The notes: generated by a model from the letters alone, not told the origin. Numbered from the stretch's first letter, positions 33,501 to 64,000 are shown. The stretch is DNA of 64,000 nucleotides from Macrostomum hystrix (GCA_950097015.1 CATNEN010000005.1:5766001-5830000), one strand, 5' to 3'. Numbers and translations: made by a program.

Positions 33501-36500
33501 ACACACCCAAAAACAAAATCCTTGGGAAACTATAAATAGAAGGGAACTGAATCACGTTCAGAGTGCACACACAAACACACACCCTCTGGTTTAGAATCGC
33601 CCACATTCAGGAAAGCACCTTGCGCTAAGGAAATACGAAAATGTAATCTGGTACGGTCGTTCTTCGCGGAACAAATCAACTTCTGAACCGATCGATAATC
33701 ACAGAAACCTATTGGTAGGAAAGAAAGCAAATGAGAAGGTAGAGTGGCACAAGCTTAGCCATGTGTACGCATTCAGTACTCTTGAAAAAATGAGCTAAAA
33801 ATTTGAGCAGAACTTGGCAGTCTAAAATCACAGTCCTAGCAGCTTAAGAAACTCATGAACGAATATGTCCGATATGTATAGAAAAATATATAAAAGCAAG
33901 CACTATAAAAAATTACACTTTAGGAGTTGATAACACCCAATAAGTGAGATGTTTGCCTATTTGTTAGAGCTTCGGACTCAGGTCTGGAGTTCGAATCCTA
34001 GCTCTAAAGAAAAAATGAAATTCAGGGAGGGTCAGGGTAGCAGCAGTCCATGGACTGAACGCATAGTTGAACGCAGCCACTGGACGCGCCACATAATAGC
34101 CTAAAAATCCACATAAACTAGCCGATATGTAGAGAAAAATGCAAAATAGCAATAAACTCACGCCAACGGTATGATGTAGGAGAATAGCAGTAGAAATCGC
34201 CAATAATATTTGTACCATTGTCCGCCGAAGCCTTTGAATGCCACCAAGAGTAGCGATAGTAGCAGAACACTGCCGACAAGCAGTTTAGTGATGTTATTAA
34301 TCTCTTGATCTACAAGGCCAAATTTGCTTCTAGGCGGTGAACTATTCATAGCGGCTCTGGTCTCGGCGCCAGTGTACACAACCACACCGAGAGCCCAGTT
34401 AGAAGCTACCACAGTGTTAGTCCATAGGGTATTCTCCACTGATAGAGAGGCCTGATCTGCGCCCACACCAGCGCCAGTAGAGTCCGGACTATCGGGCCCA
34501 GCCATGCTCAGAGTGCCAATGAAACTGTGAATATCTAGGCCCGGTCTCTCGGCGTACACGCTGGCCCCGGAGCGTAACAGTTGATCGTCTCCAGCCAATC
34601 GCTGGGTAATTGGCGGGGCTATTCGAAGCTTCCAGTCTGTTTCGCCGTCTAATTGATCGGTGCGCAGAAAGCAGGTGCCCATCTTTTCTGAGGTGCGCAA
34701 TAGAACTAGATCGGCTGGGACTCGCTCGTCTTTGTTGACGCGAATTACATCGCCAACCTGATGGATGATTCAACAGCTATTCGATTTTAGCGATAAAATT
34801 AAAAATAATGCAGCAGTTAAGACCTAAAGGTCCGGAGTTCGAATCTCAGCCTATGGAAGAATAATTCAGTTCGCTATGATACAAAATAGAGATCAGGGAG
34901 ACGGTTGGGTTAGGGTTTAAAGCATCTGAAGGCTGCGTAGCTACTGCTGTTCAGTCCATGGACTGAGAGCGACGCCACACCCACTTGTACCCATTTTTAA
35001 CAGCAGGGTGAACTGAAGCAAAGCAGATTTAAGGGTCTTGCTAAAGGACATAATTGTTCTAGTTGAGTCGGGAATCGAACACCCGCCCTTAATTCGTGAG
35101 CCCTAGTTATCCAAGTTACTCAATAGATGAGTAGTTATCTATTTGACTCACCTTCAGAGCACTGCTAGGTACCATAATCGACCTGTCCATAGTCAATCGT
35201 TCATACTTGGTGCCGTTCAGTTCTCGATCTCGGCTCCAGCGTCTAAAATCGTCTACAGCCTCTCTGACCATTGTTACAAAGACCACAAATATGAGTGGTC
35301 CCCAGTAGGTGTACAAGTAGCCAATCCGTAACGGAGGCACAAACTGGGATAAGGCCATCACTAGGAAGCAGAAGTTTAGAAACAGTTTAAACTGTTCAAA
35401 CAATACCAAAAATAAAAAGCTGAATATGGAGTATTTCTGATTTCTAATTAGATTTGCCGGATATTTCACAGTCTTGCTATGTCGGCCTAGAAACACCACA
35501 CGCGGCAGGTATTTCTTTGGAGGATTCAGACACAAACAAAAGCATTCCCAGCACCTGCGGAAAGGTTTAATGTAAGGCAGTGAGTACTTATATGTATATA
35601 TAAACAATTAAATTATTTAAACACACACATAGGGTGTGCAAATTTGCTAAGACATTCTCATTGTGAGACAGTGTACACTGTGCCTTGAAAGTTGGCCTTT
35701 AACAGCTTCAATTACAAGACAAAACCCACAAGCATTCTCTTAACAATAGAAAGTCCACACTATTTCCCCCCTGCCCTGAGGGTATGTAAAATACCCATTG
35801 CCTATGTCACAGAAGCTCCTAAACCATATGACTATTTGTGAGATATGCAGAAATTCTTGTCAAAGACCCTGGTGACAAGGATAACTAACATTGCTCTGTA
35901 TAAACCAGTATGATAAATTGATATTAGCCCAATAATATGAATCCATCAGTTTTAATATTCATAAAATAGTTTTTTAATGTTCATTGGTCTTGTTATGCCA
36001 TTTTTACCATATTGATAATTTTTGTGCCATTTTGGTACTATAGGTACAAAGTGCCAAAGTGCCAAATAAATTTGTTATATATCACTCTATCAAAAATTTT
36101 TAATCCTTTAAAATTAAAAACTACACTGGACATGTCTCCAAAATGTAATTTTTCCTAGAGGGATATGCTATGCATACATTATGGCACAAAAACCAAAGCC
36201 TAACATGTCCATAAGAAATATTGAATATTTCAATAGTACCAATGTTTTGTAATTCTGAAAGTTCTTTAAATAGATTGAGTAGAAAACATCAGCTAAAGTT
36301 AAGGATTTTCATGGAAATTGGAGATCCTTGAATGAATGTAAAAAATATTATATGTAGCTATTTGAAATACCTCCCTCTGGTGATTCTACATTCAATGGCT
36401 GTTCCAAAACAAAAATGTGACTTTATCATAGAATCAGGCTCAGAGTCATGAATATTTCTATAATTTTCAAAAATATTAGACTATAATCCTATCACTACTG

Positions 36501-36986: not shown

Positions 36987-39266
36987 TTCTAGGCAACTGT
37001 ACTGTAACTGTAGCTAACTAGACCTAGTGATGCAAGTGAAACTTTTGCCTTGGATGCTCAGCAGAAATATAATGCTTTTTCGAACCTACAACCTCAAGTA
37101 GGGGCTTTAAAATGATACGATATTAGATATAAAATATTTATTTGCGGTTGCACCTACTTCGTGCAACTGCATTCAGATCATTTTACCTTTGCCTGTCAAT
37201 AGTAATAGTAAAACAATATATCAGAATATTTATTTTACTGATTGCAATATTTTTATACAAAGCGAATGTTGCGTCTAAAGTTTCGACAGCGACTTATTGC
37301 AGACAATTTTGTGTTATGTTTTATTGTATTATTATTTTCTTTTAGAGCCTTAGTATTAAGGCTTTCGATATTGTTCAGCATAAATTGCGTCAACCGTTTT
37401 GACTGTTCTGTTCTATTCCAAGAAAAGAACATTATAAATTACAAGTTCAAACGTAGCAAATCTGCATAAGTAACCCTTAAATTTATGTCTATATTCTAGA
37501 ATATAAAAACGATGTGTGTAATTTGATTAGTTTAATCGCTACTTCGTGCAAAAAAAATTGTCTTGCGATTATGTTTTGTTTTATCATGTTGCAGTTATCG
37601 TGTTTACGTATATTTGGCCAATAAAAATCACACAATTTTAAGTAACTTCTAACACATTCTTCATTGGGTTTTTGTATGATAAGAAGTACAAAATAGAATT
37701 GTAACTTTACGATGCTATGCAAAAGACGCTATAAATAGTACCATTCAAGGACATGGACAACTAGAGTAGCCTCTTAATTAATCATCAAATTGTCAAGTAT
37801 TAAAACCTTATAATTATATCAGCATGCCTTACGTTCAGGAAGGTCGTCTTACAGCGCTCTTCAATAAGATCGTGGAGATTATTAATATACGTTATTTTAG
37901 TCGTCCTAGGTTATCATATGAAGCAAACTCTGCTTTTCCGATAGAGCTAAAAATGATATCCTTGATCCGAATATATTTTCATAGAATTCCTTACCTTATA
38001 AAGCATGCTTTTTAAAAAGGATTGAAATATCATTACCTTATGTTACCAAACTTGATAGTGGCTTCTAAAATTCTAACCTTTTAAAATCGAATGTGCCCTA
38101 TCTTAATTATGTACTTGACCATTCGCCTTGCCTTCAGCTCGTCCTATATAGCTGCAGGGTGGTCCATGGACACAGCGATCGAGGGACACCGCTAACCCCT
38201 GTAGTCCCGCAGACAGGCGATGGCACGGGACCGGTCATGATGGTACCGTCCTGCAACTTAGATAAAGAAAGGGCAGTGGCAGACAAAGTGCTCGGGATCG
38301 ACGAGCATCTGACATGCCGACGGTCGTACTTACTTATCATACTAGCTGTCTACGTACCTAGTAACGGGATCATCAGTTCAGGATTCGCTTAACATGAAAT
38401 AGAGTTGTTGTAATCAAAAAAAATTGGAAGTTGTGAATTTTTTGTATTTAAAAGTAGCTGAAATACAATAAATAAATCATTAGCTGAGTGAGAGAGAAAA
38501 GCAGAAAGCAGGTATAAGGTTGCACACAAATTAGCTCTTTAGTTGCAAAAATAAGCAAACCTTTCGAGAGTACAGGTAGTAACAAATTCGATTGAAATTA
38601 AATATGGTCATGGTAATTTGTGGATTTAGATCCATTAGCCATTATTTAGTCGCATGTTTGTTGTTGACAATTAAAGTCTTTATCAATTTTATATAAATTC
38701 TAGTTTCGCTTGGTACAAATGACGCGCTCCTAGAAAAAGACTGGCATTAAAAGCAGCTGCGCATGAAAAGGAAAAAACATAGTGTAAAATTAAAAAGTGA
38801 TTAAATTTAATTACTCGGAAAAAAAGAGAATATAAATTGTAAATAATGCGAGGGAAAGCTATATGCTTTGCTTTCGTGTTAGTGTTTGTAATTAAGATAT
38901 ACTCGTATTAGCTCGTATAAACACCAATATTACTTGGTTTTCTGTATCAACAAAAAAAATTACTTTTCATAACATCAAGATCATGCTAGTCAATCGAAAA
39001 GTTTCAAAGTTTATCCTCCAGCAGACTCAAACGATCGAGAAATGTCTTCTTTAATTTGCTCTTCAGATTGTTCTGCAAGAAATGTATAGTAGCGTATTGT
39101 TTTCTGATTGACCTCTATAAATTGTGGTGTCTGACTCATTGCATGAAACTGCAGAGACCCATGAGCTTTGACTCGGTGATGACAAGCTCATGAACTAGAA
39201 AGCTTAATAAAGCTGTGCTATTGGGCACTGCTGATTGGGGTGTATGGGAAAAAAGCTGACTATCAG

Positions 39267-42200
39267 TTACAATCGTTGAATATCTCGAGGTTCTGGATCC
39301 AGAATCTGTTTTAAAATATGTTCCATAATTTTCTGCTTTGTTTTTCAGTCGCAGCAAAACATTGTCAAGGAATATCCCTTTCGCTCGGTACTTTTTCTAT
39401 TAAAAAGGTTTTTAATCTTGAGTTTGAACATACTTGTAACTATAGTGAATACTTCTTCGGTGTTTAGCAAACACACGGGCTCGAGTCAAATTGCAGCTTC
39501 TCCTAAAAGTGCTCTCTTACTTCGTTGGTGATTTCACCAACACGTGTAACAAGGAATTACGGCATTCTTCTAAGAAATGTAATAATAATTGCTTACCGAA
39601 TCCCTAACCACATCTGCTAGTTTGTAGTGCACTGTCCTAGACTGCACCAGAGTATCCTTGTGCTCAAGAACTAGTCGCACTAGTAGGTCTTGGCGTCCCG
39701 GGCGCTTGCAGTGCTCAGTCAGCAAGTCAATTTCGCTGGTGTCCATCTCAGCGTCGAGCATTTCGTTAAACCAGCCGCGAATTAAGCCTTCGTCCGGTTC
39801 TGGACGGCCGCAGTCGCGGAGCAATCCCAGGTAGAGACTCTTGGCCAGGGCGTCGAAATTGGCCGCGTAAAATTCGTCGTAGCGAAGCAGTCGGCGCGGA
39901 AATTGAATCACCCCGGCTGGCAGGAAGTCGAATCGGAACGGGCGAGCTTGCGGAGCCTCCTAAAATTCGTGAATTGTTTAAAACTTATCTCTAAGTGTCT
40001 GTTTTGAGACTAACCAAAAATAACATGACTAATTGGCCTGTAAGCAACGTCAGCTAATGAGTGACTCGTATACTCAGTTAATAATTATAGAAGGGCTGCG
40101 GGAACTGGCACATCATAGACCTGCAGCCAGCGAGGAGGCAATTCTGCCCTTTTCGCTGACTCCTGAGCACACACGCACACACAGATACTGTACGCAGGTA
40201 CGCGCTCACAAAGGTGTACATCTGCCCTGAATTTCTCATCGTCAGGCCCACTTCACTGTGCCTTGGGGTTGGCCTTCAAGGTCATAAATTGTACGACAAG
40301 CAACCAAGCCTTCTCTCCGCGGCTGCGCCCCAAATTAACGTGGCCTCACTCACTGCGGAATCGAGCTCAGGGACCTTGATGCGCTTTAGACCGCTCTGCC
40401 ACTCACCCTCCTTAATGGTTTGAGCTTCACACTGACTGAGAAGTTGTCCTTGAGCAAAACTGAACAACTGTACATACTCTTTAGAAGATGTACCCAATTA
40501 GCCGTGCATCGGTTTGGTGTAATTTCTATCTCTGTGTTCCCTGCTTCGGATCGGGAAAAATAGTGTCGAGTGGTGTCTATTTCTCATTTTTTAGATCTCA
40601 AAGTAAAATCGCACCTGTACAAAGCAGAAGCGCCATGCCGAGTCATTGTTTAGTAGGCATTGTTGCACAGTGTCGCTGGTTGCGTCTGTCGATGAAAGTT
40701 TGAGACCGCGCATAGGCCGATGGCCGGAAAGTAGCAGCTTTTCTAGGCGACCCAACGCCTCAGTGGGTTGATCGTAGCGCAGATAAGCCAGCGCAGCGAT
40801 GCACTCACGCGTGGTCCTGGCACAGTCAGGCAATCTTTCAATGTCCTCCAGCAGAGCGCTCAGACTGCCGCGACTGTCGCCCTGACCGCCAACTGACAAT
40901 TCGCGAAGGCACCAGCGAATGTACTCGAACAGTTCGTGATACTCGAGCGGCTTCTGATTTTCGGCTGACGTAGGCCAGCTCTGTCGAGTGTCCTGTGAGC
41001 GAAGTATATGACGGACCTGCTTGCTTCGCGGCAGCAGCATAAACGGATGATAATATAGGCCTTTGTTTGGTCTGAGCGGTTGCAGCTGCCTCACAAACTC
41101 GACGAGAACCTCGCTAAGTCGCTCTCGCACGTCCAAGACCGCTGCCAGAGTTGGTCGACTATCACCGTCAGCACTGCTCACATTGTCGGATCGTTTTAGC
41201 GGCAGCGGCGCGTCCGGAAAGAAGAAGCTGTGCATTGTCCCCTCCTTCTGCGTCGGCACGTGCGGATCCACGTTCTGCTCCAAGTCCTGGGCTAGCTTGT
41301 CCAGCGCCATGGCTGTCAGTTCCGGCAGTCGGTTTGTTCTCCACATATCTGGTGGCGTCTCGCGCACCATGCGAAAGGCCAGCGTCTTGGCATGGAACGA
41401 CTTTAATTGGCCTCCGCGTTGATTGATGACCCGTTTGACAAGGTACTTTAAGATTATGTACAACTGGCCCTTAAAATGATAAGCCAGCGCAGCGTCAGCT
41501 GTTTAACCAAATTCCAATGGATTTCTGGATAACAAACCTCCTGACAACATACCTGGACATTGTTGAAGCTGCGCACCAATGGCAGTTCCAGCCATTTTGT
41601 ACTGACGCGCAATTGCTTGCCCTCCTGACCGGGCAACGACGCGCCAACTAGCGGACAGGCCTCTGTGCATACCAGCTCCGCTCGCAGCTGGCTGATGAGC
41701 TCGGGCGATAGGTAACCGGGCGAGTTGAGGATGTGCACGTCGGGATAGGCGCAGAAGCGGTACATCAGGGCCATATCCATTGCTGGACGACCAAGGCAGC
41801 CGTATTGAGTGCGTGCTGGTTGGGCGGCTGTTATGATGGCAAATTACAGATTATACAAAGTTGGATTAATGAGCGAATATTAACTTTCGAGAATTTTTTT
41901 TCGGCAATATAAAATTATTCAAGCGACTGAATCGTATCGAATCGTAAAGTAGTTTAAAAGCATCTTTACCATATCCGTTGAATCCAACGTGTCCCATTTT
42001 GTAGGTGAGGGTTTCTTGCTCCCTCAGCATGTCGTCAGCGGACTCCTGCGCGGAGTCCTCATTGACGCTGCTATTTTTAACTGCGCTGTCGTCTTCACCG
42101 TGGCGATTACATTTACACTTTCCACTCAGGTGATAGAGCCGATCGTCCGCATATTCGGACACGTCGATATCTGAGTCGGAGTCCACCCGACCGCTGAGTC

Positions 42201-44484
42201 GCGTCACGGAGCTGCCCCAACCTTCGGCGTAGCTGCCGCACAGGTGAATTCGATTGTTCGCTGAGTACTGGCGAATTAGTGACTGCAGGTGGTCGGCTGC
42301 GGCTGATTGTTGCGAGGCTCGCGACTGAACAAAACCGGCTGCAACCATAGCAGACTGAAGCCTGGTGCCGCTTTAGAGAGGTTTTGAATACAAATACGTC
42401 TCAGGAAGTTCATCAAGTATTCGTGGATAATAGAGCCACTTATAAAGCCACTAAGTTCTTACTAAACCTCAAAATAAAAAAGTTGCCGTATTTTTTTTCT
42501 TAAACATCGACAACGAATAATCGACAGCAAAAAAAGCTAAACGATTCGACGTACGACGTTCGATGCACGACGTTCAAAGTACGGCTCTCTACGTACGACT
42601 TTCGATATATGTCATTCGAACGACATCTACATGTATCGACATCGAACGGCATCATCGAAATTTACATTCATGGACTCGAGAAGTTGTTAATAAAGACATC
42701 ATTTTAGTTTGATGCCTTCTATCATATAATTAAATCACATCACTTGTACACATTTTAAAGACTCACTCGATGATTCGAATATTTTTAGTTTTCCTGGTCT
42801 GCTCAAGCGCCACCCTTTTATCGAGCTCCGTAACGAGCCTATCTAGCCTGTTGGAACCGTCGGATGATGAAGGAACAGCGTCACGAAAGCACTCGCGAAG
42901 CCAATCCCTGAAGCAGCTAGTTGAGTTTGCGCTAGTCCGTATCTTGGCGAGTATCGCCATGGCGCAGCCGGTGTGCTGGAAGAGCACGGCAACATCCAGT
43001 GGAGTCAGCAGCAGTCTCTTCTCCTGCTGCAGCGGATCTGCACCGTGAAAGAGCAGCACCTCGAGGGCGTTGGTCCGACCGCTCATTGCAGCCAGATGCA
43101 GAGGTGTCCAGGTGTCTCTCAACTGCAGGCTAACCTGGGCCTCATTTTCTAATAGGCAGCGAGCGATCTCTGCGTCCCCTGTCCATGCAGCCACATGCAG
43201 CGGAGTCCAACCGCGACGACCTTTGGCAAGCACGGCGTCTCTGCTGTGCTTCAGCAGGGTTCGAACTACGTCTAGTCGACGCAAACGGCATGCGACATGA
43301 AGCGGCGTCCAGCCGTCATTTGAAATCACAATCTGAGAGGCGCCATAGTCAAGGAGTAGTCGAACAACTTTAGTATGGCCTCTGTGAGCAGCGTAGTGAA
43401 GTGGCGTTACACCTTGGATGCTGTCGCGCAAGTTGACTATAGCGTCGGCCTTGAGCAGCACTTCGACCGCCTTCTCGTGCCCGCTGTCTGCGGCGTGGTG
43501 CAACGGTGACCAACCCTTCATGTCCTGCAAATCTAGGTTGACCCAGTCCGACTTTTCAATTAGAAGTGAAACAACAGCTACGTGACCGCGACGGGCCGCT
43601 CCGTGAATTGGCGCCTGAAAATTTAGGCGACAATAAACCATCAGCGATCTATGATCCGAGAAAGCGCCTGTTAAAATCCATTCAAAAATTAAAGCACAAG
43701 GATAGACTACGATTGAATTCGAGGCTATACAGAATTCAAAACACTGGTAATTGTCTATGGTAAAAGCTCCATTATTTGGACTCACTTGTTGGCTACAGTA
43801 TCTTACAATGACACTGTACTATGCACTATTTAACAAATGATAGTTGAGCTACAACCAATCAGGGAAGCAACTGACCCATCCGAGCTGGTTGCGCTTGTTG
43901 ACGTCGATATTTTCGCACTTCAGCAGAACCTGCACCAGTCCAGGAAAGCCCCGTAACGCTGCCGTATGCAGCGGCGCCCATTGGGCATTGTCGACCGCAT
44001 TGACAGTTGCACCGTAGCGAATGAGCATTTCGGATACTTTGGGATTATTATGCTCGCAAGCAGCGTGCAGAGGCGTTCTACCTAGATTATTAGATAGATC
44101 GACCATTGCTCCAGCCTTCAATAACTCCGTTGTAGGCTCCAAGTGGCCTCTTAAAGCTGCTAGGTACAACGGAGTTGCGCCTTCTTTGTCTCGCGTATTC
44201 AACGTTGAAGTCCGATTGACACCATCTCCAAGGCCAAGGTCAAGGCCGGTTTGATGTTTACCCGCCAGGAAGGAATGTGCAACATTTGCGCTGATGTTGC
44301 ATCGTTGGAGAAGCATACGAACGGTAGTTCCGTCTTTATGCAGAGTGGCTTTGTGCAGCAGAGTGCGTCCTTTGGCATTGCGACAGGCTTGCAGCTCATT
44401 GGGGCTAAGTGCTTTAAGCACAGTTTTCAGTGCTTCGATTTGGCCGGCCTCAATGATCAGGAATACCTGCCTGCAAATATTCAT
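39267..44484 (-). CDS. Ankyrin-repeat + cGAS-like/Mab-21 nucleotidyltransferase (cGLR) fusion protein, ~1138 aa. Exons (minus): 44484-43876, 43614-42767, 42370-41970, 41827-41553, 41469-40615, 39959-39597, 39332-39267 (last exon tentative; alternative ATG at 44517)
   Basis: About 11 ankyrin repeats (GATPLYLAA, GRTPLHAAC, GWAPIHGAA, GWSPLHHAA, GVTPLHYAA, GWTPLHVAC, GWTPLHVAA, TWTPLHLAA...). The NTase region has GSYAEG...DSDIDV, AMDMAL, LRVSTKWLE, YIILKYLVK, LKSFHAKTLAF and MHSFFFPDAPL. A GTGAGT donor overlapping the apparent ankyrin stop (ATC GA|gtgagt, 42766) joins the aaag|C GGC acceptor (42371) in phase 2. Confidence 0.8.
40075..40410 (-). mobile_element. SINE family A, copy 5 (in the ANK-cGLR intron)
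   Basis: The reverse strand reads gagtggcagagcggtctaaagcgcatcaaggtccctgagctcgattccg...gcctcctcgctggctgcaggtc...cccgcagccc-attatt. Confidence 0.88.
42520..42670 (+). repeat. Short degenerate tcgacgt/acgacgttc repeat within the ANK-to-cGLR intron
   Basis: CpG-rich microrepeats. Confidence 0.6.
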
Positions 44485-45002
44485 CTGTGAGAATAAAATC
44501 GCTCTTTTGAATGGCATTTAGGCTTCAATCTTCAGTCCTACATAAGTTCGCCTGCCCTAAGTTAAGCATTTTATCTCTTTCATTAGGCTATGTACTTTAA
44601 GCGATTCTATTTATTCTGCAGCTCGGCAGACAGCGTACATTTGATTCTCAGAGAAGCTTACTGCTCAAAGGTGGCAAGTTGTAAAAAAGAAGTTTAAGTG
44701 TCAGAGAAACAGGCAGAGAAGAGGCAGAGAAACATTATACTCGTATTTGGAAGATCATGTCCAATTGCGCACATGAAGCACCCAACCCCATTGCTCTGAG
44801 CTGTGCAATAAACTGTCATTATGGTACCGTGTTACTGTGCTATTAGTGGGTAGGGCTTTTCATAGTTTTTTTTCATGCCACAAGGATGTATTTATTACTA
44901 GCCGCTTATAAAAATATCCAAATGAAACGTGATGCATATTGAATAATTTCCCTATGCACATATAAACTTTTTTTCTATGAATCGTATTCGAGCACTATAT
45001 TA

Positions 45003-47744: not shown

Positions 47745-49154
47745 TCATAATCTACAGTCCAGGCTATATTGCAACACGGAGTGCCATATCTTGTGCCAGT
47801 GTACGTCAATGACTGTGCTACCCTCTGAGATCAGGAAAATATGGTCCACGATCGACTCAGAGGCGAGGCTGGGAATCAAAGTTGTGAATCCGTGACCCCT
47901 TCTGAACTTACTTGCTGGAACACCCACCGAAGCGGCCAAGGTCCCTGTGACGTGAACATCGTCAATCCAAAAGAATTGTTTAAAAAATGAGCACAAGTAC
48001 ATGTCCGGGATGCTTATGGCGTGCAAAATGTATGCGAATCCTTCGCAGTATGTGGGATAAAACGTGCCTGAGAATTCCTGCCAGGACACTATCCACTTTG
48101 ACTTAGAACCCTTGGATGGTCGAAAAGGCTTCGAGCGCTGTGTTGCTGAGCAGTACAGTCCTGCAGGATTCACCCTGCTCAGGAATGTGGCCAGATGAGC
48201 CACGTCCGTGAACGTGTCGTCGTCGACCTTGACGAGGTACCGCGCCGACCGGCAGTGCCTCAGGAGCCACTCGTACACACCCAGGTGCTTGATGGTCAAG
48301 TTCCTGTAGTTCTCGGTGAAGCCCAGCTGCACAATGTCTCCGAAGCGGTCGCTCTCTGCTCCGATCCGAGCCCGCAGCTGAGCTCCAGTCGCTCCGGACT
48401 CGTCCGAGTCTCCCGACGCTGGCAGGCCGAGGAAGAACGCCACCTCGATGCGGAACTGGCCGATGTACCGGAGCGAGCCCCACGTCCTACGGATGGTCGC
48501 TCGTCGGGCGAGGTTCTTCGCGTTGCTGTGCACCGCTACCAAGGCCAGCAGCTCGCCAGAGCACAGGTGCTCAGCGCTGCGCACAAAGTCGTAAGACTGC
48601 ACGTAGCGCAGCGTCGGTGTCTGGCCTCCGCACTTGCTCGCCGCGACTCCCAACTGCTCCTCCGTGACTGCCGATCCCAGCCACTTCAGCTTGGACCGCA
48701 TCTGAGCGTACAAGCTGGGGCTGCTCGCTGCCTGGATTCGCTCCATCAGAGTTCTCGGTTTCGGCCCAGGTGAATCCTTTGCTGGTTTCAGTTTCGTTAC
48801 ATCTTCAAGTGGATTTTCTATGACAAAATCATTCGCTTGCACAAATTGTTTCTTTTCTTTGATGCGAATTTCAATCTTCGTTGATATCGGATTTTCTAAA
48901 GTCTTGTTTCTCATATAAGTGACTTTTGTTGAAGCTGTCGGATGAGTGGGTTTCGTGTCCCGTCCGGTTGCGGTCGGTGTTTGACGGCCACCTGCAGTTT
49001 GTCGAACAGCGACTGTCAGGAGCAGAAGCGCCAGCAGAAGCAGCACCCAGCAGCACTGCTTGAAGCAAATCTGCAGCATCCTGACCCAGAAGATTAGGAC
49101 TCGCGTTGTTTTGCTCGCAAATAGTTGTCTTGTCTTCCGACTACATGTATTCAT
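47745..49154 (-). CDS. Beta-1,3-galactosyltransferase (GT31, B3GALT/brainiac-like), paralog 1, intronless type II membrane protein
   Basis: An N-terminal TM segment (WVLLLLALLLLTVAV), then VAVHS...RRATIRRTWG, FGDIVQLGFTENYRNLTIK, YLVKVDDDTF, YPTYCEGFAY and WIDDVHVTG. The true start may be the second Met (MLQICFK). Confidence 0.92.
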   Translation of the reverse strand: MNTCSRKTRQLFASKTTRVLIFWVRMLQICFKQCCWVLLLLALLLLTVAVRQTAGGRQTPTATGRDTKPTHPTASTKVTYMRNKTLENPISTKIEIRIKEKKQFVQANDFVIENPLEDVTKLKPAKDSPGPKPRTLMERIQAASSPSLYAQMRSKLKWLGSAVTEEQLGVAASKCGGQTPTLRYVQSYDFVRSAEHLCSGELLALVAVHSNAKNLARRATIRRTWGSLRYIGQFRIEVAFFLGLPASGDSDESGATGAQLRARIGAESDRFGDIVQLGFTENYRNLTIKHLGVYEWLLRHCRSARYLVKVDDDTFTDVAHLATFLSRVNPAGLYCSATQRSKPFRPSKGSKSKWIVSWQEFSGTFYPTYCEGFAYILHAISIPDMYLCSFFKQFFWIDDVHVTGTLAASVGVPASKFRRGHGFTTLIPSLASESIVDHIFLISEGSTVIDVHWHKIWHSVLQYSLDCRL

Positions 49155-50942: not shown

Positions 50943-52313
50943 TCACAGGTTCAAATCTAAACTATAGTGCAGCACCGAAAGCCACAGTTTTCGCCACAAG
51001 ACATCAAAGAAGTCGCCGCTTCGTTCGGTCAGAAAAATGAAGTCCGTGATGGACTCAGAGGCGAGGCTGGGAAGCAGAATTGCAAATCCGTGACCATTGC
51101 GGAATCGAGACACTGGAACACTCATCGAAGTGGCCAGGGTGCCTGTGACGTGAACGTCGTCGATCCAGAAGAATTTCGTGAACAGTGAGCACAGGAACAA
51201 GTCGGCAATGTGATTGGTGGAGACTACATATGCGAATCCTTCACAATAGGTTGGATAAATGCTTTGGGAATATTCTTGCATTGTGACTACCCACTTGACA
51301 TTTTCACCAAGAGGAACTCTATAGGGCCTCGAGCCTTGTGTTGCCGTGCAGTACAGTCCTGTAGGACTCACTAGGCTAAGGTAGGTGGCCAGGTGAGCCA
51401 CGTCCGTGAACGTGTCGTCGTCGACCTTGACGAGGTACCGCGCCGACCGGCAGTGCCTCAGGAGCCACTCGTACACACCCAGGTGCTTGATGGTCAAGTT
51501 CCTGTAGTTCTCGGTGAAGCCCAGCTGCACAATGTCTCCGAAGCGGTCGCTCTCTGCTCCGATCCGAGCCCGCAGCTGAGCTCCAGTCGCTCCGGACTCG
51601 TCCGAGTCTCCCGACGCTGGCAGGCCGAGGAAGAACGCCACCTCGATGCGGAACTGGCCGATGTACCGGAGCGAGCCCCACGTCCTGCGGATGGTCGCTC
51701 GTCGGGCGAGGTTCTTCGCGTTGCTGTGCACCGCTACCAAGGCCAGCAGCTCGCCAGAGCACAGGTGCTCAGCGCTGCGCATAAAGTCGTAAGACTGCAC
51801 GTAGCGCAGCGTCGGTGTCTGGCCTCCGCACTTGCCCGCCGCGACTCCCAACTGCTCCTCCGTGACTGCCGATCCCAGCCACTTCAGCTTGGACCGCATC
51901 TGAGCGTACAGGCTGGGGCTGCTCGCTGCCTGGATTCGCTCCATCAGAGTTGTCGGTCGCGAAGTTGTTTTCGGGCCTGATTTTTGCGAAGTTGTTCTTG
52001 GCTCTGATTTTGAAGTCTCTCCAGCAGACTTTGTGCTTCTATCATCTTGAAGCGGACTTTCGAGCACAAAGTCACTGGGTGCTACCTCTTCGCGCTCGAT
52101 TCTCGAATCGATGACAGCTTTGATAGAATTCTGATTCAATGTATTCGTAGCGGGGCTTTTCATTTCCTGCTCATTCTGTTGATTCTGAGCTGTTCTCGAG
52201 TCATTGAGCCGGACACTGAGTGACAGAATCAGTAGAACAAGAAGAAATGAGCATCGATGGAAGCCAATTGGGACGGTCATTTGCAGCAATTCTTGCAGGC
52301 TAGGCCAGATCAA
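50943..52313 (-). CDS. Beta-1,3-galactosyltransferase (GT31), paralog 2, intronless
   Basis: Same motif set as paralog 1; TM segment FLLVLLILSLSV. Confidence 0.92.
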   Translation of the reverse strand: MIWPSLQELLQMTVPIGFHRCSFLLVLLILSLSVRLNDSRTAQNQQNEQEMKSPATNTLNQNSIKAVIDSRIEREEVAPSDFVLESPLQDDRSTKSAGETSKSEPRTTSQKSGPKTTSRPTTLMERIQAASSPSLYAQMRSKLKWLGSAVTEEQLGVAAGKCGGQTPTLRYVQSYDFMRSAEHLCSGELLALVAVHSNAKNLARRATIRRTWGSLRYIGQFRIEVAFFLGLPASGDSDESGATGAQLRARIGAESDRFGDIVQLGFTENYRNLTIKHLGVYEWLLRHCRSARYLVKVDDDTFTDVAHLATYLSLVSPTGLYCTATQGSRPYRVPLGENVKWVVTMQEYSQSIYPTYCEGFAYVVSTNHIADLFLCSLFTKFFWIDDVHVTGTLATSMSVPVSRFRNGHGFAILLPSLASESITDFIFLTERSGDFFDVLWRKLWLSVLHYSLDLNL

Positions 52314-55071: not shown

Positions 55072-56568
55072 ATGCCTTTCCTCATAGCCGATATTGTCAG
55101 ACACACAGTCGTGGAGCGCCACCTGCAGCACAGGGTTCAAATGCCGCAACTGAGCATGAGAAGATGGACCTGGCTGCTGCTGCTGCTGCTGTACCTGGCG
55201 CTCACAGTGCAACTGTCAGTTGGAGGTAGGCAGATCCGTCACGCGACTGTTGCCAACACGCAGCAGACTGCGGTATCAGAAGATCAAGTTCAACAGAAGA
55301 AGCCAGTCCCGGCAAGCAGCAAATCCAGAAGTGCTGATCCTTTACTTTTCGGAGGGGTCGAGGAAGCAGCGACTGCTACTCAAAGACCTACTCAAAGACC
55401 TACTCAAAGACCTACTCAAAGACCTACGATTCCGGAAACAATAATGTCAAAAGAGAAAAAGTCTAAAGCACCGACGAAAACAAACTCCCTGGCAAAACCG
55501 AAAAAGCACCAAAAAACATCAGCAGCTGAGAGGATGCCTACGACTATAGCCAACCCGAGAACTCTGATGGAGCGAATCCAGGCAGCGAGCAGCCCCAGCT
55601 TGTACGCTCAGATGCGGTCCAAGCTGAAGTGGCTGGGATCGGCAGTCACCGAGGAGCAGTTGGGAGTCGCGGCGAGCAAGTGCGGAGGCCAGACACCGAC
55701 GCTGCGCTACGTGCAGTCTTACGACTTTGTGCGCAGCGCTGAGCACTTGTGCTCTGGCGAGCTGCTGGCCTTGGTAGCGGTGCACAGCAACGCGAAGAAC
55801 CTCGCCCGACGAGCGACCATCCGTAGGACGTGGGGCTCGCTCCGGTACATCGGCCAGTTCCGCATCGAGGTGGCGTTCTTCCTCGGCCTGCCAGCGTCGG
55901 GAGACTCGGACGAGTCCGGAGCGACTGGAGCTCAGCTGCGGGCTCGGATCGGAGCAGAGAGCGACCGCTTCGGAGACATTGTGCAGCTGGGCTTCACCGA
56001 GAACTACAGGAACTTGACCATCAAGCACCTGGGTGTGTACGAGTGGCTCCTGAGGCACTGCCGGTCGGCGCGGTACCTCGTCAAGGTCGACGACGACACG
56101 TTCACGGACGTGGCTCATCTGGCCACATTCCTGAGCAGGGGTGCTCCATCAGGATTCTTTTGCTCAGCTACGATAGGAGCGAAGCCCCAGAGAGTTCGCA
56201 GAGGCTACAATGCGAAATGGATGGTTAGCCAAGCCGAATTTGCAGACAAGTTCTACCCGACCTACTGCGAAGGATTCGGCTACACTGTGCACACAAAGCA
56301 CGTAGCCAATATTTATCTTTGCTCGTTGTTCAAGAAGTTCTTCTGGATCGACGACGTTCATGTGACGGGCATCCTGACCAAGTCGACGGGTGTTCCAGTT
56401 ACCAGGTTCTGGAGAGGTCACGGCTATACTGTTCTGGTGCCTAGCTTGGCTTCCGAAGCCATCACGGACTACATGTTCCTGACTGCTTTCAACAGCGAAT
56501 TCTTTGCGGGTCTCTGGACCAAGCTGTGGCATGCAGTGCTTCGCTACAGTCTAGACACTGCACTGTAG
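55072..56568 (+). CDS. Beta-1,3-galactosyltransferase (GT31), paralog 3, inverted relative to 1 and 2; probable start MPQLSMRRW at 55141
   Basis: Same GT31 motifs; TM segment WTWLLLLLLYLALTV; TQRP x4 repeats in the stem (12-bp unit ctactcaaagac, ~55375-55425). Confidence 0.92.
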   Translation: MPFLIADIVRHTVVERHLQHRVQMPQLSMRRWTWLLLLLLYLALTVQLSVGGRQIRHATVANTQQTAVSEDQVQQKKPVPASSKSRSADPLLFGGVEEAATATQRPTQRPTQRPTQRPTIPETIMSKEKKSKAPTKTNSLAKPKKHQKTSAAERMPTTIANPRTLMERIQAASSPSLYAQMRSKLKWLGSAVTEEQLGVAASKCGGQTPTLRYVQSYDFVRSAEHLCSGELLALVAVHSNAKNLARRATIRRTWGSLRYIGQFRIEVAFFLGLPASGDSDESGATGAQLRARIGAESDRFGDIVQLGFTENYRNLTIKHLGVYEWLLRHCRSARYLVKVDDDTFTDVAHLATFLSRGAPSGFFCSATIGAKPQRVRRGYNAKWMVSQAEFADKFYPTYCEGFGYTVHTKHVANIYLCSLFKKFFWIDDVHVTGILTKSTGVPVTRFWRGHGYTVLVPSLASEAITDYMFLTAFNSEFFAGLWTKLWHAVLRYSLDTAL

Positions 56569-58425
56569 CGACTGACATTCTAAGGACTGTAGCGACTGAC
56601 ATTCTAAGGACTGTAGCGACTGACATTCTAAGGACTGTAGCGACTGACATTCTAAGGACTGTAGCGACTGACATTCTAAGGACTGTAGCGACTGACATTC
56701 TAAGGACTGTAGCGACTGACATTCTAAGGACTGTAGCGACTGACATTCTAAGGACTGTAGCGACTGACATTCTAAGGACTGTAGCGACTGACATTCTAAG
56801 GACTGTAGCGACTGACATTCTAAGGACTGTAGCGACTGACATTCTAAGGTCTGTAGCGACTGACATTCTAAGGTCTGTAGCGACTGACATTCTAAGGACT
56901 GTAGCGACTGACTTTCTAAGGACTGTAGCGACTGACGTTCTAAGGACTGTAGCGACTGACATTCTAAGGTCTGTAGCGACTGACATTCTAAGGACTGACA
57001 TAGCGACTGACATTCTAAGGACTGTAGCGACTGACATTCTAAGGACTGTAGCGACTGACATTCTAAGGACTGTAGCGACTGACATTCTAAGGACTGTAGC
57101 GACTGACATTCTAAGGACTGTAGCGACTGACATTCTAAGGACTGTAGCGACTGACATTCTAAGGTCTGTAGCGACTGACATTCTAAGGACTGTAGCGACT
57201 GACATTCTAAGGTCTGTAGCGACTGACATTCTAAGGACTGTAGCGACTGACATTCTAAGGACTGTAGCGACTGACATTCTAAGGTCTGTAGCGACTGACA
57301 TTCTAAGGACTGTAGCGACTGACATTCTAAGGACTGTAGCGACTGACATTCTAAGGACTGTAGCGACTGACATTCTAAGGTCTGTAGCGACTGACATTCT
57401 AAGGACTGTAGCGACTGACATTCTAAGGACTGTAGCGACTGACATTCTAAGGTCTGTAGCGACTGACATTCTAAGGACTGTAGCGACTGACATTCTAAGG
57501 ACTGTAGCGACTGACATTCTAAGGACTGTAGCGACTGACATTCTAAGGACTGTAGCGACTGACATTCTAAGGACTGTAGCGACTGACATTCTAAGGACTG
57601 TAGCGACTGACATTCTAAGGACTGTAGCGACTGACATTCTAAGGTCTGTAGCGACTGACATTCTAAGGACTGTAGCGACTGACATTCTAAGGACTGTAGC
57701 GACTGACATTCTAAGGACTGTAGCGACTGACATTCTAAGGTCTGTAGCGACTGACATTCTAAGGACTGTAGCGACTGACATTCTAAGGACTGTAGCGACT
57801 GACATTCTAAGGACTGTAGCGACTGACATTCTAAGGACTGTAGCGACTGACATTCTAAGGTCTGTAGCGACTGACATTCTAAGGACTGTAGCGACTGACA
57901 TTCTAAGGACTGTAGCGACTGACATTCTAAGGACTGTAGCGACTGACATTCTAAGGTCTGTAGCGACTGACATTCTAAGGTCTGTAGCGACTGACATTCT
58001 AAGGACTGTAGCGACTGACATTCTAAGGACTGTAGCGACTGACATTCTAAGGACTGTAGCGACTGACATTCTAAGGTCTGTAGCGACTGACATTCTAAGG
58101 TCTGTAGCGACTGACATTCTAAGGTCTGTAGCGACTGACATTCTAAGGACTGTAGCGACTGACTTTCTAAGGACTGTAGCGACTGACATTCTAAGGACTG
58201 TAGCGACTGACATTCTAAGGACTGTAGCGACTGACTTTCTAAGGACTGTAGCGACTGACATTCTAAGGACTGTAGCGACTGACATTCTAAGGACTGTAGC
58301 GACTGACATTCTAAGGACTGTAGCGACTGACATTCTAAGGTCTGTAGCGACTGACATTCTAAGGTCTGTAGCGACTGACTTTCTAAGGACTGTAGCGACT
58401 GACATTCTAAGGTCTGTAGCGACTA
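56563..58425 (+). repeat. Highly homogeneous minisatellite, 24-bp unit gtagcgactgacattctaaggact (~77 copies)
   Basis: Tandem copies differ mainly at a single a/t position; the array begins at the paralog 3 stop codon. Confidence 0.98.
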
Positions 58426-58984
58426 TTCTTTCAACTGCTCTAGCGAAGGCAGTCTAGTTATGCTAACTTTTTAGTATTAACGTAGTTTTCAAATCAAATC
58501 AACGTAGACTGCATCAACTGAAAATGAGTTGTAATAATTAAGTCAATTAGAACAACAGCCGTGTTACGTAGAGCTTAGTCGGTTCTGAAAATAGCATTTG
58601 AAACAAACTTGTTAAAAATGTGCTTGCGTGTATTTGTCGTTCTTTCTAAAATTAGCATAGAAAGTGTACATGACGAGAAAATTTATGGAAATTGAATCGA
58701 AGTTTCGATAACTGTCATAATAACTTGTACCAATTTTAAATGCTTCTGCCGTATTGCTTGATTATTTGGTAATAAATGGATACGTGGACGAATTTATGGA
58801 TTTAAGTAAGAAGTGCCAATTTTTGCTTTTAAAAGCTTATTAAGCTATTTTTTAATTTGTTCTTTTTTAAACAAAAAAGTCTTCAGTGAGGAAATGGAAA
58901 AATTCTTGATAAGATAAAAATGTGAAGAGCAACCATTAAAAGCGTTAAAACGTGCTTAGGCACAGAGGCTGCACTCATTTGGGT

Positions 58985-59280: not shown

Positions 59281-60224
59281 GCATTTTGTAAGTACGAGCG
59301 AAGATGTCAGCCTCGCGACACAGCCGACGGTATCAGTGACTCTGACAGTGATTAGGAGTGATCGCTTGAAACTGAAATCCAAAAATCGTATTTGTTGTTT
59401 TTGATGTTTAATGCAAAATTCATTACAACTTTTGATCAGTTTATCCGATTGCGCTGAAATTTTAGGACATAATAAAAATAATCTTATTGCAATTGCATAT
59501 CAAATTTCAAGTGATTTGGCCATTTCAACTCAAAATGGTGACGTCAGTCCGGAAACTTTTGAAACACCCCTCGTATTTTGTGAGTTTCCTTGTCGGTTTC
59601 AGCTCACGTTTTCCCATTTGAGAATTATAATAGACCGGCTATTTATAGCTCTAGAAAGACAAGACAGGATTCAATTTGAAAGTACTATTACCGATTCAAT
59701 TTAAAATTATTTGGCAATGGCACTAAGCGTTAAATACTTGTACGTCGTACGTAATATTTCTACTCGTAATTCTAGAATATGTGGTCTAATTTTAGCATAG
59801 AGTCTGTGACCGCTATTTATATGGTCAATAGGCCAATAAACACTCAAGCTGCTATTTACTATGCGAACTGAGAGCAGAAGGAACTGCAGGTTTACAACAC
59901 ATCGACCCGTATGCTGGCTGAAGAGAACGAGAAAACGGTGCATTTATGTAATTGTCGTCAATAAATAGAGCCTCGTTGCCAGCTTGTATCTCTATAGCAT
60001 AGGCGAATCCCTAACAGTGAAATGCTTTGAATTCCTTTCAAAGGCAGATAATAATTAAGCAAGTGTTTACTGGCACCGATCTGTTTACATTTTCTGTTGC
60101 TTGAAAACAGACAAGTTATAAACAGAAATATGACTCAGAATGCAGCCGCTTATCATGCTAATGCTTAATAATTAACAAACTGAAAGGCTGTTCTAAGTAA
60201 AATTCTACTTGTGAAATTCCTTTC

Positions 60225-60464
60225 GGGCGCAGTCGCGGAGAGAAGGCTTCGAGGGCTTGTACCCAAGGTACAGTGAAAGTGCATACACTGCCTCACGATG
60301 AGAAAGTCAGGGCAGATATACACACCTGTGTGAGCGTGTGCTTGTGTACGGTATCTGTGTGCCTGTGTGCTCAGGAGTCAGCGTATTGGGCAGAATTGTC
60401 TCCTCGCTGGCTGCGGGTCTAGTGTCACCAAATGATGTGCCATTGCCCGCAGCCCTCCTGCAAC

Positions 60465-60497
<33 letters not shown>

Positions 60498-60500
60498 TAT
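60225..60500 (+). mobile_element. SINE family A, copy 8 with a long (att)n tail
   Basis: gggcgcagtcgcggagagaaggctt...gatgagaaagtcagggcaga...cccgcagccctcctgcaactg(ttat)n. Confidence 0.88.
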
Positions 60501-60979
60501 ATCCTTCTTAGTAACCATGCTCTCAAATCACGCCTTAAAATAAAATTTAATTTAAACAATTTTTCCAGTGACCTCAACGGCCGTTTTAAACAGCTAATTT
60601 TTTAATTAAGATTTACATGAACAGTACCAGATCAGATATTTCAGAAAGAGATCATGATGATTGACAATTGGAACCGCAAATTTGCACCCTGCGTAACAAA
60701 TTTCAACAGTCCATCATGCAGTGACAGTTAGACATTTGAAGGAATGCAATGGACCAACTTCAGCACCGGTTCTGCTATAGTGAATTTCAAAAACTAGCTG
60801 CGTCAATTTGTGTTTAATCTGCACTTTGCACTTTTGACCGAAAGCTAACTTCAGAAAATGGAAAGTGTCTGCATTGTACGAGACTTGCTAGATAATGCAT
60901 AAGATGTGCCATTTCATTGGCTACTTTCTTATCCACCATTCAACTATAAAACTAAAAGCATCCGAAAATTGCATATTTT

Positions 60980-62800
60980 GCATTCACCCCTTCTTGTCAT
61001 TATTCACCCCTTCTTGTCATTATTCACCCCTTCTTGTCCTTATTCACCCCTTCTTGTCATTATTCACCCCTTCTTGTCATTATTCACCCCTTCTTGTCAT
61101 TATTCACCCCTTCTTGTCATTATTCACCCCTTCTTGTCATTATTCACCCCTTCTTGTCATTATTCACCCCTTCTTGTCATTATTCACCCCTTCTTGTCCT
61201 TAATCACCCTTCCTGTCCTTATTCACCCCTTCTTGTCATTATTCACCCCTTCTTGTCATTATTCACCCCTTCTTGTCATTATTCACCCCTTCTTGTCATT
61301 ATTCACCCCTTTTTGTCATTATTCACCCCTTCTTGTCATTATTCACACTTCCTGTCCTTATTCACCCTTCCTGTCATTATTCACCCTTTCTTGTCATTAT
61401 TCACCCATTCTTGTCATTATTCACCCCTTCTTGTCCTTATTCACCCCTTCTTGTCATTATTCACCCCTTCTAGTCATTATTCACCCCTTCTAGTCATTAT
61501 TCACCCCTTCTAGTCATTATTCACCCCTTCTTGTCCTTATTCACCCCTTCTTGTCATTATTCACCCCTTCTAGTCATTATTCACTCCTTCTAGTCATTAT
61601 TCACCCCTTCTTGTCCTTATTCACCCCTTCTTGTCATTATTCACCATTTCTTGTCATTATTCACCCCTTCTTGTCCTTATTCACCCCTTCTTGTCATTAT
61701 TCACCCCTTCTTGTCCTTATTCACCCCTTCTAATCTTTATTCACCCCTTCTTGTCCTTAATCACCCTTCCTGTCATTATTCACCCCTTCTCGTCATTATT
61801 CACCCTTCTTGTCATTATTCACCCCTTCTTGTCATTATTCACCCCTTCTTGTCATTATTCACCCCTTCTTGTCATTATTCACCCCTTCTTGTCCTTATTC
61901 ACCCCTTCTTGTCATTATTCACCCCTTCTTGTCCTTATTCACCCCTTCTAATCTTTATTCACCCCTTCTTGTCCTTAATCACCTTTCCTGTCATTATTCA
62001 CCCCTTCTTGTCATTATTCACCCCTTCTTGTCCTTAATCACCCTTCCTGTCATTATTCACCCCTTCTTGTCATTATTCACCTTCTTGTCATTATTCACCC
62101 CTTCTTGTCCTTATTCACCCCTTCTTGTCATTATTGACCCCTTCTTGTCATTATTCACCATTTCTTGTCATTATTCACCATTTCTTGTCATTATTCACCC
62201 CTTCTTGTCCTTATTCACCCCTTCTTGTCGTTATTCACCCCTTCTTGTCCTTAATGACCCTTCCTGTCATTATTCACCCCTTCTTGTCATTATTCACCTA
62301 CTTGTCATTATTCACCTTCTTGTCATTATCCACCCCTTCTTGTCATTATTCACCCCTTCTTGTCATTATTCACCATTTCTTGTCATTATTCACCCCTTCG
62401 TGTCCTTATTCACCCCTTCTAGTCATTATTTACCCCTTCTTGTTATTATTCACCCCTTCTTGTCCTTATTCACCCCTTCTAATCTTTATTCACCCCTTCT
62501 TTTCAATATTCACCCCTTCTTGTCCTTATTCACCCCTTCTAATATTTATTCACCCCTTCTTTTCAATATTCACCCTTCTTGTCCTTATTCACCCTTCCTG
62601 TCCTTATTCACCCTTCCTGTCATTATTCACCCTTCTTGTCATTATTCACCCCTTCTAGTCATTATTCACCCCTTCTTGTCATTATTGACCCCTTCTTGTC
62701 CTTATTCACCCCTTCTTGTCATTATTCACCCTTTCTTGTCATTATTCACCCCTTCTAATCTTTATTCACCCCTTCTTATCCTTATTCACCTCTTCCTGTC
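60980..62800 (+). repeat. Minisatellite, 20-bp unit tattcaccccttcttgtcat (~90 copies, with 19/28-bp variants)
   Basis: Tandem copies; this array is the source of the SLFTP/IIHPF ORFs. Confidence 0.97.
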
Positions 62801-63384
62801 TTCATTCACAACTTTATAAATGTATTCACACATTCGTGGCCTTGTCATGTCACCAAGACACATTTCTTGTTATAATTCACAGAATCCTCTATCATTCACA
62901 ACATTTTTTTCTTCATTTCTTATAATGAATAAGGTAGCATTAACTACATATACGAGCTTCAAATTGCACACACGAGTACATTTCTGGGTGGAGTCACAGA
63001 TAACTATGACTTCTTGGAATATAAAGGATTTAAAGGGAAGTCTGGCCCAGATATTTAGGATTATAATGCACCCCAATAAATCTTAAGTATGAGTAATAAG
63101 TGAACTCTTAGAGAGAGAGTTTTGTCATCCACTTTGCAGGGACGAGTTAGTTTTTAAGAAATAGAGCCTAGGCAACTAGATAACTAAGTAAAAGCTATAC
63201 AAATAAAATAGGAGCCCAATTCATCAACCAGTTAGATGAGAGTTACTGACTGACTGATGATAGATAAGCACGAGGCCTTCTAAAGAAAATTAATTGCCTC
63301 TACAGGCCTCTACTTTGGGTTTTATATAAGATCAACCAAACCTTGCTCCTTGCTCTTAGCAGCTTTTCGAATGGGATAGTTTTA

Positions 63385-63915
63385 AGGAATTTTATTGAAT
63401 CCCTTATCGATAATCCCATTTAGTAGATTATGAATCCTTTATCGATAATCCCATTCAGTAGATTATGAATCCTTTATTGATAATCCTATTTAGTAGATTA
63501 TGAATCCTTTATCGATAATCCCCTTTTAGTAGATTATGAATCCCTTATCACGAATCCCCATTCAGTAGATTATGAATCCCTCATCACGAATCCCCATTCA
63601 GTAGATTATGAATCCCTCATCACGAATCCCCATTCAGTAGATTATGAATCCCTCATCACGAATCCCCATTCAGTAGATTATGAATCCCTCATCACAAATC
63701 CCCATTCAGTAGATTATGAATCCCTCATCACGAATCCCCATTCAGTAGATTATGAATCCCTTATCACGAATCCCCATTCAGTAGATCATGAATCCCTTAT
63801 CACGAATCCCCATTCAGTAGATTATGAATTCCTTATTGATAATCCCAATTCAGTAGATTTAGAATCCCTTATCGATAATCCCTTCTAGTAGATTATGAAT
63901 GCCTTATTACTAATT
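63385..63915 (+). repeat. Minisatellite, 36-bp unit aatccccattcagtagattatgaatccctcatcacg
   Basis: Direct tandem copies. Confidence 0.93.
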
Positions 63916-64000
63916 CCCGTTCAGTATAATATGGATTCCAAAAAATCGAATTTAATCCTGAATTGATGTAGACTCATATGCATTTGTTTTTAAGTTTTTT

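Follow-up and report, generated by a model that had tools for sequence, protein, structure and literature searches.

A transcript-supported ankyrin-repeat gene of Macrostomum hystrix with a predicted cGAS-like nucleotidyltransferase domain

We describe a gene on a 64,000-nucleotide (nt) stretch of the Macrostomum hystrix genome assembly (GCA_950097015.1, CATNEN010000005.1:5766001-5830000; the whole stretch is called the window below, and positions are counted from its first letter). Two minus-strand reading frames in this window, one for ankyrin repeats (ANK) and one for a nucleotidyltransferase (NTase), are parts of a single expressed fusion gene. Our reading of the locus, to which we assign a probability of about 0.8, is that this is an expressed seven-exon gene of a free-living, Macrostomum-type flatworm encoding a cytosolic protein of 1150 amino acids (aa), in which ankyrin repeats, a cGAS-like receptor (cGLR) core with a complete active site and a helical domain follow one another, and that it belongs to a large Macrostomum-specific, already catalogued expansion. 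The predicted layout consists of ankyrin repeats (residues approximately 20-450), a short linker, the cGLR NTase core (approximately 498-848) and a tetratricopeptide repeat (TPR)-like helical tail of approximately 300 aa.

Gene structure and transcript evidence

A reading of the strand combined with a scripted splice-site test yields one minus-strand gene spanning 39004-44555, with a frame that is uninterrupted across seven exons (Table 1). An in-frame TAA directly precedes the ATG at 44517. Exon 1 stops in the middle of an ankyrin repeat (...NQLGW/APIHGAARRGH...), which is made whole only by splicing.

Six public sequencing runs contain the stretch, four of them with approximately 0.58 of its sampled words, a value near the exon share. 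Contigs of four runs were mapped onto positions 38900-44800. All joints are found with 0 mismatches on single spliced contigs from two runs of study P2 (X3 record 16, 4016 nt, and X4 record 18, 3684 nt), each of which covers all of the exons: 43876->43614, 42767->42370, 41970->41827, 41553->41469, 40615->39959 and 39597->39072 (the skips as placed by the mapping are 43613/43875, 42370/42767, 41827/41970, 41468/41552, 39958/40614 and 39072/39597). Every intron reads CT..AC on the plus strand and hence GT..AG in the direction of the gene. The joint that matters most, 42767->42370 between the ankyrin and NTase frames, also occurs with 0 mismatches in X1 record 6, a contig of 239 nt that comes from a second study, which brings the total to three runs and two studies. 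No contig depth is seen over intron 2 (42446-42642), and the other introns are likewise without depth, apart from the repeat in intron 5. The 3' untranslated region runs leftwards beyond 38900 in the X3 and X4 contigs. Because the contigs are intron-less and canonically spliced, we take the runs to be RNA.

A 140-nt contig of a further run (X2 record 13; window 41442-41581) is collinear with the genome across the 83-nt intron 4, and the spliced joint is found on another X2 contig. The unspliced contig stems from pre-mRNA, from DNA present in the run or from a retained intron, which would shift the reading frame. Over the repeat in intron 5 (40116-40355), summed contig depth reaches the thousands in both X3 and X4, and dozens of variant contigs occur there along with loose ends and odd 'joints'; many variant contigs lie over 40082-40475, and the flanking intron is without depth. 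No ARAGORN (tRNA) or Rfam match was obtained in the gene region, this repeat included.

A preliminary description of the locus, made from the sequence alone, had proposed one fused seven-exon ankyrin-NTase frame, the junction 42767->42370, and a donor ATC GA/GTGAGT joined to an acceptor ctctaaag/C GGC ACC; the contigs bear out all three. Its left boundary of 39267 falls in intron 6 (the last exon is 39072-39004), and its estimate of approximately 1138 aa gives way to a continuous frame of 1150 aa. It had also pointed to the apparent stop codon of the ankyrin frame. This codon (42765-42763) does lie inside the exon 2 donor, but it does not represent a special mechanism: with a GTRA donor, every phase-2 intron that stays unspliced reads xxG-TRA, and intron 2 accordingly gives GAG-TGA. 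The M. lignano orthologue discussed below has a phase-2 intron at the same place, with the donor AA/GTAAGA reading AAG-TAA. A regulatory role for the stop was rejected, since a phase-2 GTRA donor produces one in every case and M. lignano has its own, TAA; comparison of the two gene models indicates that the ankyrin-NTase intron is a conserved intron position.

Table 1. Features of the fusion gene, in order of transcription (window coordinates)
Feature	Position	Strand	Basis
5' untranslated leader	44518-44555	minus	X3 record 16 reaches 44555, 38 nt ahead of the start codon (44517)
Exon 1, 214 codons: start codon, ankyrin repeats 1-4 and first half of repeat 5	43876-44517	minus	Pfam Ank_2, E 3.7e-28; joint 43876->43614
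Exon 2, 848 nt: ankyrin repeats 5-11 and linker; ends in phase 2, donor GA/GTGAGT	42767-43614	minus	Pfam Ank_2, E 8.3e-50; joint 42767->42370
Exon 3, 401 nt: predicted N-terminal spine helix and catalytic G542-S543 (42237-42232), D564 (42171-42169) and D566 (42165-42163)	41970-42370	minus	Sequence; family conservation
Exon 4, 275 nt: predicted third catalytic Asp D648 (41777-41775) and LRVSTKWLE strand/helix	41553-41827	minus	Joints 41970->41827 and 41553->41469 in contigs
Exon 5, 285 codons: predicted Mab-21 C-terminal (HhH/H2TH-like) lobe, LKYL...LKSFHAKT; helical domain starts at approximately 41091	40615-41469	minus	Mab-21_C below threshold; profile alignment to cGLR1/cGAS
Intron 5, with high-copy interspersed repeat at approximately 40116-40355	39960-40614	minus	Contigs skip 40615->39959
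Exon 6, 121 codons: part of the predicted C-terminal TPR-like helical domain	39597-39959	minus	Joints; tblastn against M. lignano locus; AlphaFold2 model
Exon 7, 22 codons and stop; translation NNLKSKLKKTFLDRLSLLEDKL then stop (ends ...SLLEDKL, stop)	39004-39072	minus	Joint 39597->39072 in X3 and X4 contigs

Ankyrin repeats, active site and predicted fold

The N-terminal part of the protein contains 11 ankyrin motifs of the xxPLHxA type, approximately 33 residues apart and one of them split by intron 1, and Pfam Ank_2 matches both of the exons that encode them (Table 1). Further along, the protein carries GSYAEG at residue 542, DSDIDV at 562, PAMDMAL at 645, LRVSTKWLE at 703 and LKSFHAKT at 744. 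The active-site set consists of G542-S543, D564-I-D566 and D648, with a spacing between the first two elements (GS-x20-DID) that is longer than in cGAS. We prepared an alignment of the NTase and tail region of 36 family members (A1), to which the window protein was added for residue mapping: G542 is conserved in 36 of 36 sequences, S543 in 35, D564 and D566 in 34 each, and D648 in 30. The count of approximately 11 repeats, the motifs and the intact triad (D564, D566 and D648) given in the preliminary description are thus all found in the window protein.

The fold was predicted with AlphaFold2 (AF2) using A1 on residues 175-822 of P0067, a 63%-identical M. lignano protein. The model of its NTase and tail has a predicted local distance difference test score (pLDDT) of 86.6 and a predicted template modelling score (pTM) of 0.89. 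The top 50 Foldseek matches are all cGAS except for Cv-cGLR1 at rank 3, with a probability of 1.00. In VIA-align, mouse cGAS is matched with a Z score of 19.8 and a root-mean-square deviation of 3.6 over 269 residues (model 5-353 against cGAS 149-506), Cv-cGLR1 with a Z score of 18.8 and human MB21D2 with 18.4. When the A1 profile was compared with PDB sequences, it matched only cGLR1 (8gjy, 3e-5), cGAS entries (3.5e-5 to 2e-4) and, weakly, MAB21L1 (5eog, 0.68). In the profile alignment LK(S/T)YHAKT pairs with SYHVKT of cGAS and, in a stretch that is not significant alone, LRVST.FLE pairs with WRLSFSHTEK. Neighbours identified by a protein language model are Mab-21 clusters of Cnidaria and Mollusca, with a score of 0.96.

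In the orthologue model, the catalytic residues follow strand 46-49, stand where strand 72-86 begins and lie within strand 156-165, a predicted placement that is the Pol-beta-type arrangement; from this model we infer that the three aspartates cluster in three dimensions. The prediction supports a cGAS/Mab-21 fold for the NTase part. Both the cGAS-type fold and the equivalence of two of its motifs to SYHVKT and WRLSFSH had been anticipated from the window sequence, and both agree with these comparisons. With cGAS, Cv-cGLR1 (8gjw) and MB21D2 (7lt1), the Macrostomum protein would share the bilobal Mab-21 NTase fold, the GS / [DE]x[DE] / D site and the SYH.KT helix. It differs from them in that identity is only 13-18%, in that its core is acidic (isoelectric point [pI] 6.2) where theirs have basic DNA- or RNA-binding surfaces, and in having both a Cys/His- and acidic-rich insertion after DID and flanking sensor-type repeat domains.

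C-terminal helical domain

The tail (residues approximately 849-1150) is a conserved helical domain of approximately 300 aa that the preliminary description had missed. It is family-specific, with the conserved motifs FHPF, LPDCA, DSAWKFCF and NF. Searches with 294 aa of tail returned no Pfam family and no sequence relative in the PDB (best E 0.1). A separate AF2 model of the tail is mostly helical (pLDDT 83), and its structural matches are weak and to TPR/HAT solenoids, with Z scores of 8 or less in the PDB and TM scores of 0.40-0.49 in the Atlas, values within the noise range of helical repeats. We describe the tail as a predicted TPR-like, lineage-specific helical domain and assign it no further.

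Relatives in Macrostomum and the published catalogue

A phmmer search of 1.84 billion cluster representatives with exon 5 matched only 66 proteins. Thirty of the 66 matched clusters were looked up, and all are from M. lignano except for one JGI metagenome protein, in keeping with the flatworm origin suggested earlier; among these 30, no relative of exon 5 outside Macrostomum was found at E<=1e-3. The family comprises approximately 65 M. lignano clusters at 50% identity, mostly with the same fusion layout. Most matches are 800-1600 aa in length with ankyrin repeats ahead of the NTase, and the family signature is GS[YF][AS]EGWG-x-L-x-G-x-SDID. Paralogues of 1100-1170 aa align across residues 100-1053 at approximately 30% identity. 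A homologue search with the NTase region of the orthologue recovered five M. lignano paralogues only.

One of these relatives, P0067 (PAA83814.1, BOX15_Mlig026362g1), is an 822-aa protein that is 63% identical over residues 311-1130 of the window protein, an alignment that crosses the ankyrin-NTase joint. On sequence comparison, the window gene is the orthologue of BOX15_Mlig026362g1. In the M. lignano locus (L001, NIVC01000405.1; the annotated gene occupies 1769-6782), ankyrin exons with homology to residues 3-215 of the window protein are found at 837-1410, upstream of where PAA83814.1 is annotated to start. These exons show that the public model is truncated at its N-terminal end, and the full layout of the window gene is probably present in the orthologue as well. 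Identity between the species, as determined by tblastn against the M. lignano locus, is lowest for the ankyrin repeats of exon 1 (47%) and highest for the tail portion in exon 6 (77%). At 63% protein identity, synonymous sites are probably saturated.

Some family members depart from this layout. In P0040 and P0107 (PAA59752.1 and PAA80948.1) the cGLR core is N-terminal and the UniProt name is 'Caspase family p20 domain-containing protein'; these may be cGLR-caspase fusions. P0001 (1346 aa) and P0020 (997 aa) each have two GS..GWG..SDID signatures, a tandem double-cGLR arrangement like the multi-cGLR fusions of Li et al. 2023 (10.1101/2023.02.22.529553).

That study catalogued approximately 3,000 cGLRs, 87% of them stand-alone and some fused to ankyrin or TPR modules, and illustrates cGLRs of Stylophora that can carry both ANK and death domains (Li et al. 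2023, Fig. 1C/4C). In the available portions of its supplement, Table S2 lists M. lignano proteins (PAA accessions) with Ank_2, and rows 89-93 of Table S3 are five M. lignano NTase constructs with the signature of this family, cloned for a 140-enzyme screen (10.1101/2023.02.22.529553). Two of these (rows 90-91) fall in clusters matched by exon 5: PAA45980.1 in the P0045 cluster (E 4.1e-9) and PAA57558.1 in the P0044 cluster (E 1.6e-9). The accession of the orthologue itself, PAA83814.1, was not found in these portions of the tables. Both the ANK-cGLR architecture and the Macrostomum family are therefore already in the 2023 catalogue, and the preliminary suggestion that the architecture might be uncatalogued does not stand. 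No dedicated study emerged when the literature was searched for Macrostomum in combination with cGAS, cGLR or STING.

The window protein shares with the M. lignano ANK-cGLR family the ANK - NTase - helical-tail layout, the GS[YF][AS]EGWG...SDID signature and the phase-2 intron position, and differs in coming from another species and in that the public model of its orthologue is short at the N terminus. Like the ANK/death-domain cGLRs of Stylophora pistillata, it has a cGLR NTase core joined to ankyrin repeats presumed to bind ligand or protein; unlike them, the Macrostomum family adds a TPR-like C-terminal domain. Since exon 5 has no relative outside Macrostomum at E<=1e-3 among the clusters looked up, the ankyrin fusion in Macrostomum may be independent of those of other animals.

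Proposed activity and alternative explanations

That the protein is a catalyst is suggested by the retention of GS, DxD and the third Asp in 30-36 of 36 paralogues at an overall identity of approximately 30%. By analogy with cGAS and characterized cGLRs, the enzyme would rest inactive until a ligand is recognised. Once activated, it would convert nucleoside triphosphates to a nucleotide second messenger, a cyclic dinucleotide being the most likely product, by two-metal catalysis, with the three carboxylates holding two Mg2+ or Mn2+ ions, and the nucleotide signal would be read by a STING-type receptor.

Ligand recognition, or regulation of the enzyme, may operate through the ankyrin and/or helical flanks rather than through a basic nucleic-acid groove. 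This is weakly favoured because the NTase core is acidic (pI 6.17) whereas cGLRs that sense nucleic acids have pI values >8.5 (Li et al. 2023, 10.1101/2023.02.22.529553). A more specific version, which we regard as tentative and rather unlikely, is that these proteins are non-nucleic-acid cGLRs: the fast-evolving ankyrin repeats, together with the strongly conserved tail, would recognise a pathogen protein or other cue and thereby free an auto-inhibited acidic core, and the product would be read by soluble doubled TIR-STING proteins. If true, a cGLR-STING pathway that is complete and specific to this lineage would exist in a phylum from which it is said to be largely lost.

Several points weigh against the reading of the locus as an expressed, catalytic cGLR fusion. 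In the records, the kind of the runs is given as '?' or 'RNA? (a guess)', such that their RNA nature rests on the intron-less contigs, and the structure was predicted for the orthologue, not the window protein. Of the two domain types that the preliminary description expected profile searches to recognise, the ankyrin repeats are recovered, but the Mab-21 domain is not fully so: PF03281 (the Mab-21 N-terminal NTase) is unmatched both on window exons 3-4 (at E<=1) and in eight family members (at E<=0.01), and PF20266 (Mab-21_C) matches exon 5 with E 4.3e-4 and 20.8 bits, under the curated cut-off of 24.1, which is exceeded in the paralogues P0001 (26.2) and P0026 (28.4). The pI argument is weak, as paralogue cores range from 5.4 to 9.4. 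M. lignano is unmentioned in the main text of Li et al. 2023, which covers 15 selected active cGLRs, and the available portions of Table S3 contain no activity column (10.1101/2023.02.22.529553). Nor does any member of the family have a known ligand or enzymatic product.

The most serious alternative, which we nevertheless judge unlikely, is that the Mab-21 domain serves as a scaffold with no enzymatic role, or that its signalling involves no synthesis of nucleotides, as in the developmental MAB21L1/2 or in the crustacean Mab21 proteins reported to activate IKK-epsilon, with the ankyrin and helical domains mediating protein-protein signalling. The presence of two large protein-interaction modules fits such a role, as does the lack of a named M. 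lignano enzyme in the main text on the 15 active cGLRs, and non-canonical Mab21 signalling outside nucleic-acid sensing has already been proposed (PMC12928593). However, conservation of GS, DxD and the third Asp among such diverged paralogues is hard to explain without catalysis, and Li et al. 2023 (10.1101/2023.02.22.529553) attribute the apparent in vitro inactivity of many cGLRs solely to their ligands not being known. Neither a degenerate active site nor closest kinship to Mab21L, the marks of a MAB21L1/2-type protein, was found: the triad is intact, and the family profile matches MAB21L1 (5eog) with E 0.68 as against 3e-5 for cGLR1 and cGAS.

It is less probable still, and in our estimation quite improbable, that the protein is an active NTase of other chemistry, either synthesizing linear 2'-5' oligonucleotides as OAS does or tailing or nucleotidylating RNA or protein recruited by the ankyrin repeats. 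The long GS-x20-DID spacing would be compatible with this, the product is not known, and the sole Pfam hint on the catalytic exon is to an MTPAP-like palm (E 0.2; 0.008 in paralogue P0001). These MTPAP matches are, however, far below cut-off, whereas the sequence profile finds only cGLR, cGAS and Mab21, and the whole-domain fold matches are cGAS, Cv-cGLR1 and MB21D2, with no OAS, poly(A) polymerase or terminal uridylyltransferase (TUTase) among the top 50 Foldseek or the VIA-align rows.

Finally, it is scarcely credible that there are two adjoining genes, an ankyrin gene ending at 42763 and an NTase gene starting from the ATG at 42348, with the joined form being a rare read-through or assembly chimera: the ORF track does show this stop and this ATG, and the contigs, from which rare variants are dropped, do not allow transcript start, end or level to be read, but the joint is canonical (GT..AG), in phase and free of mismatches in three runs and two studies, intron 2 is without depth, the annotation of the M. 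lignano orthologue contains the joint, which is conserved there, and dozens of paralogues have the same layout.

Genomic surroundings

A tblastn search with the protein found no second copy of the gene within the window. The large ORFs between 27 and 64 kb comprise galactosyltransferases, a flippase exon and a repeat. Three paralogous single-exon ORFs of 456-498 aa (47745-49154 and 50943-52313 on the minus strand, 55072-56568 on the plus strand) match Galactosyl_T (PF01762) with E values of approximately 1e-33, and a small local cluster of predicted galactosyltransferase genes adjoins the cGLR gene. Both strands have long open frames at 56489-58457, of 638 and 643 aa, with only scattered, repeat-type Pfam matches (e.g. 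Gp5_trimer_C); rather than a gene, this region appears to be a tract of low complexity or of tandem repeats. On the other side, 35116-35607 (minus strand) encodes a P4-ATPase N-terminal domain (PF16209, E 1.7e-15) and is probably one exon of a flippase gene spanning approximately 29-35 kb. Composition changes sharply at 60001-64000, where the GC skew lies between -0.41 and -0.43 and the AT skew at approximately -0.2, as compared to values near 0 in most of the window. Nothing in these surroundings points to an immune gene cluster.

Conclusions

Among the pattern-recognition receptors of animals, cGLRs form a major family, most members of which are orphans. Flatworms other than Macrostomum are reported to be without cGLRs. 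Because the architecture and the Macrostomum family are in the 2023 cGLR catalogue, the gene described here reveals no new kind of system. It provides a transcript-supported, fully resolved gene model for one ankyrin-cGLR, and this model corrects the truncated public model of the M. lignano orthologue. The gene belongs to the minority of cGLRs that bear ankyrin or TPR modules, and it comes from a lineage of regenerating model flatworms in which RNA interference is routine.

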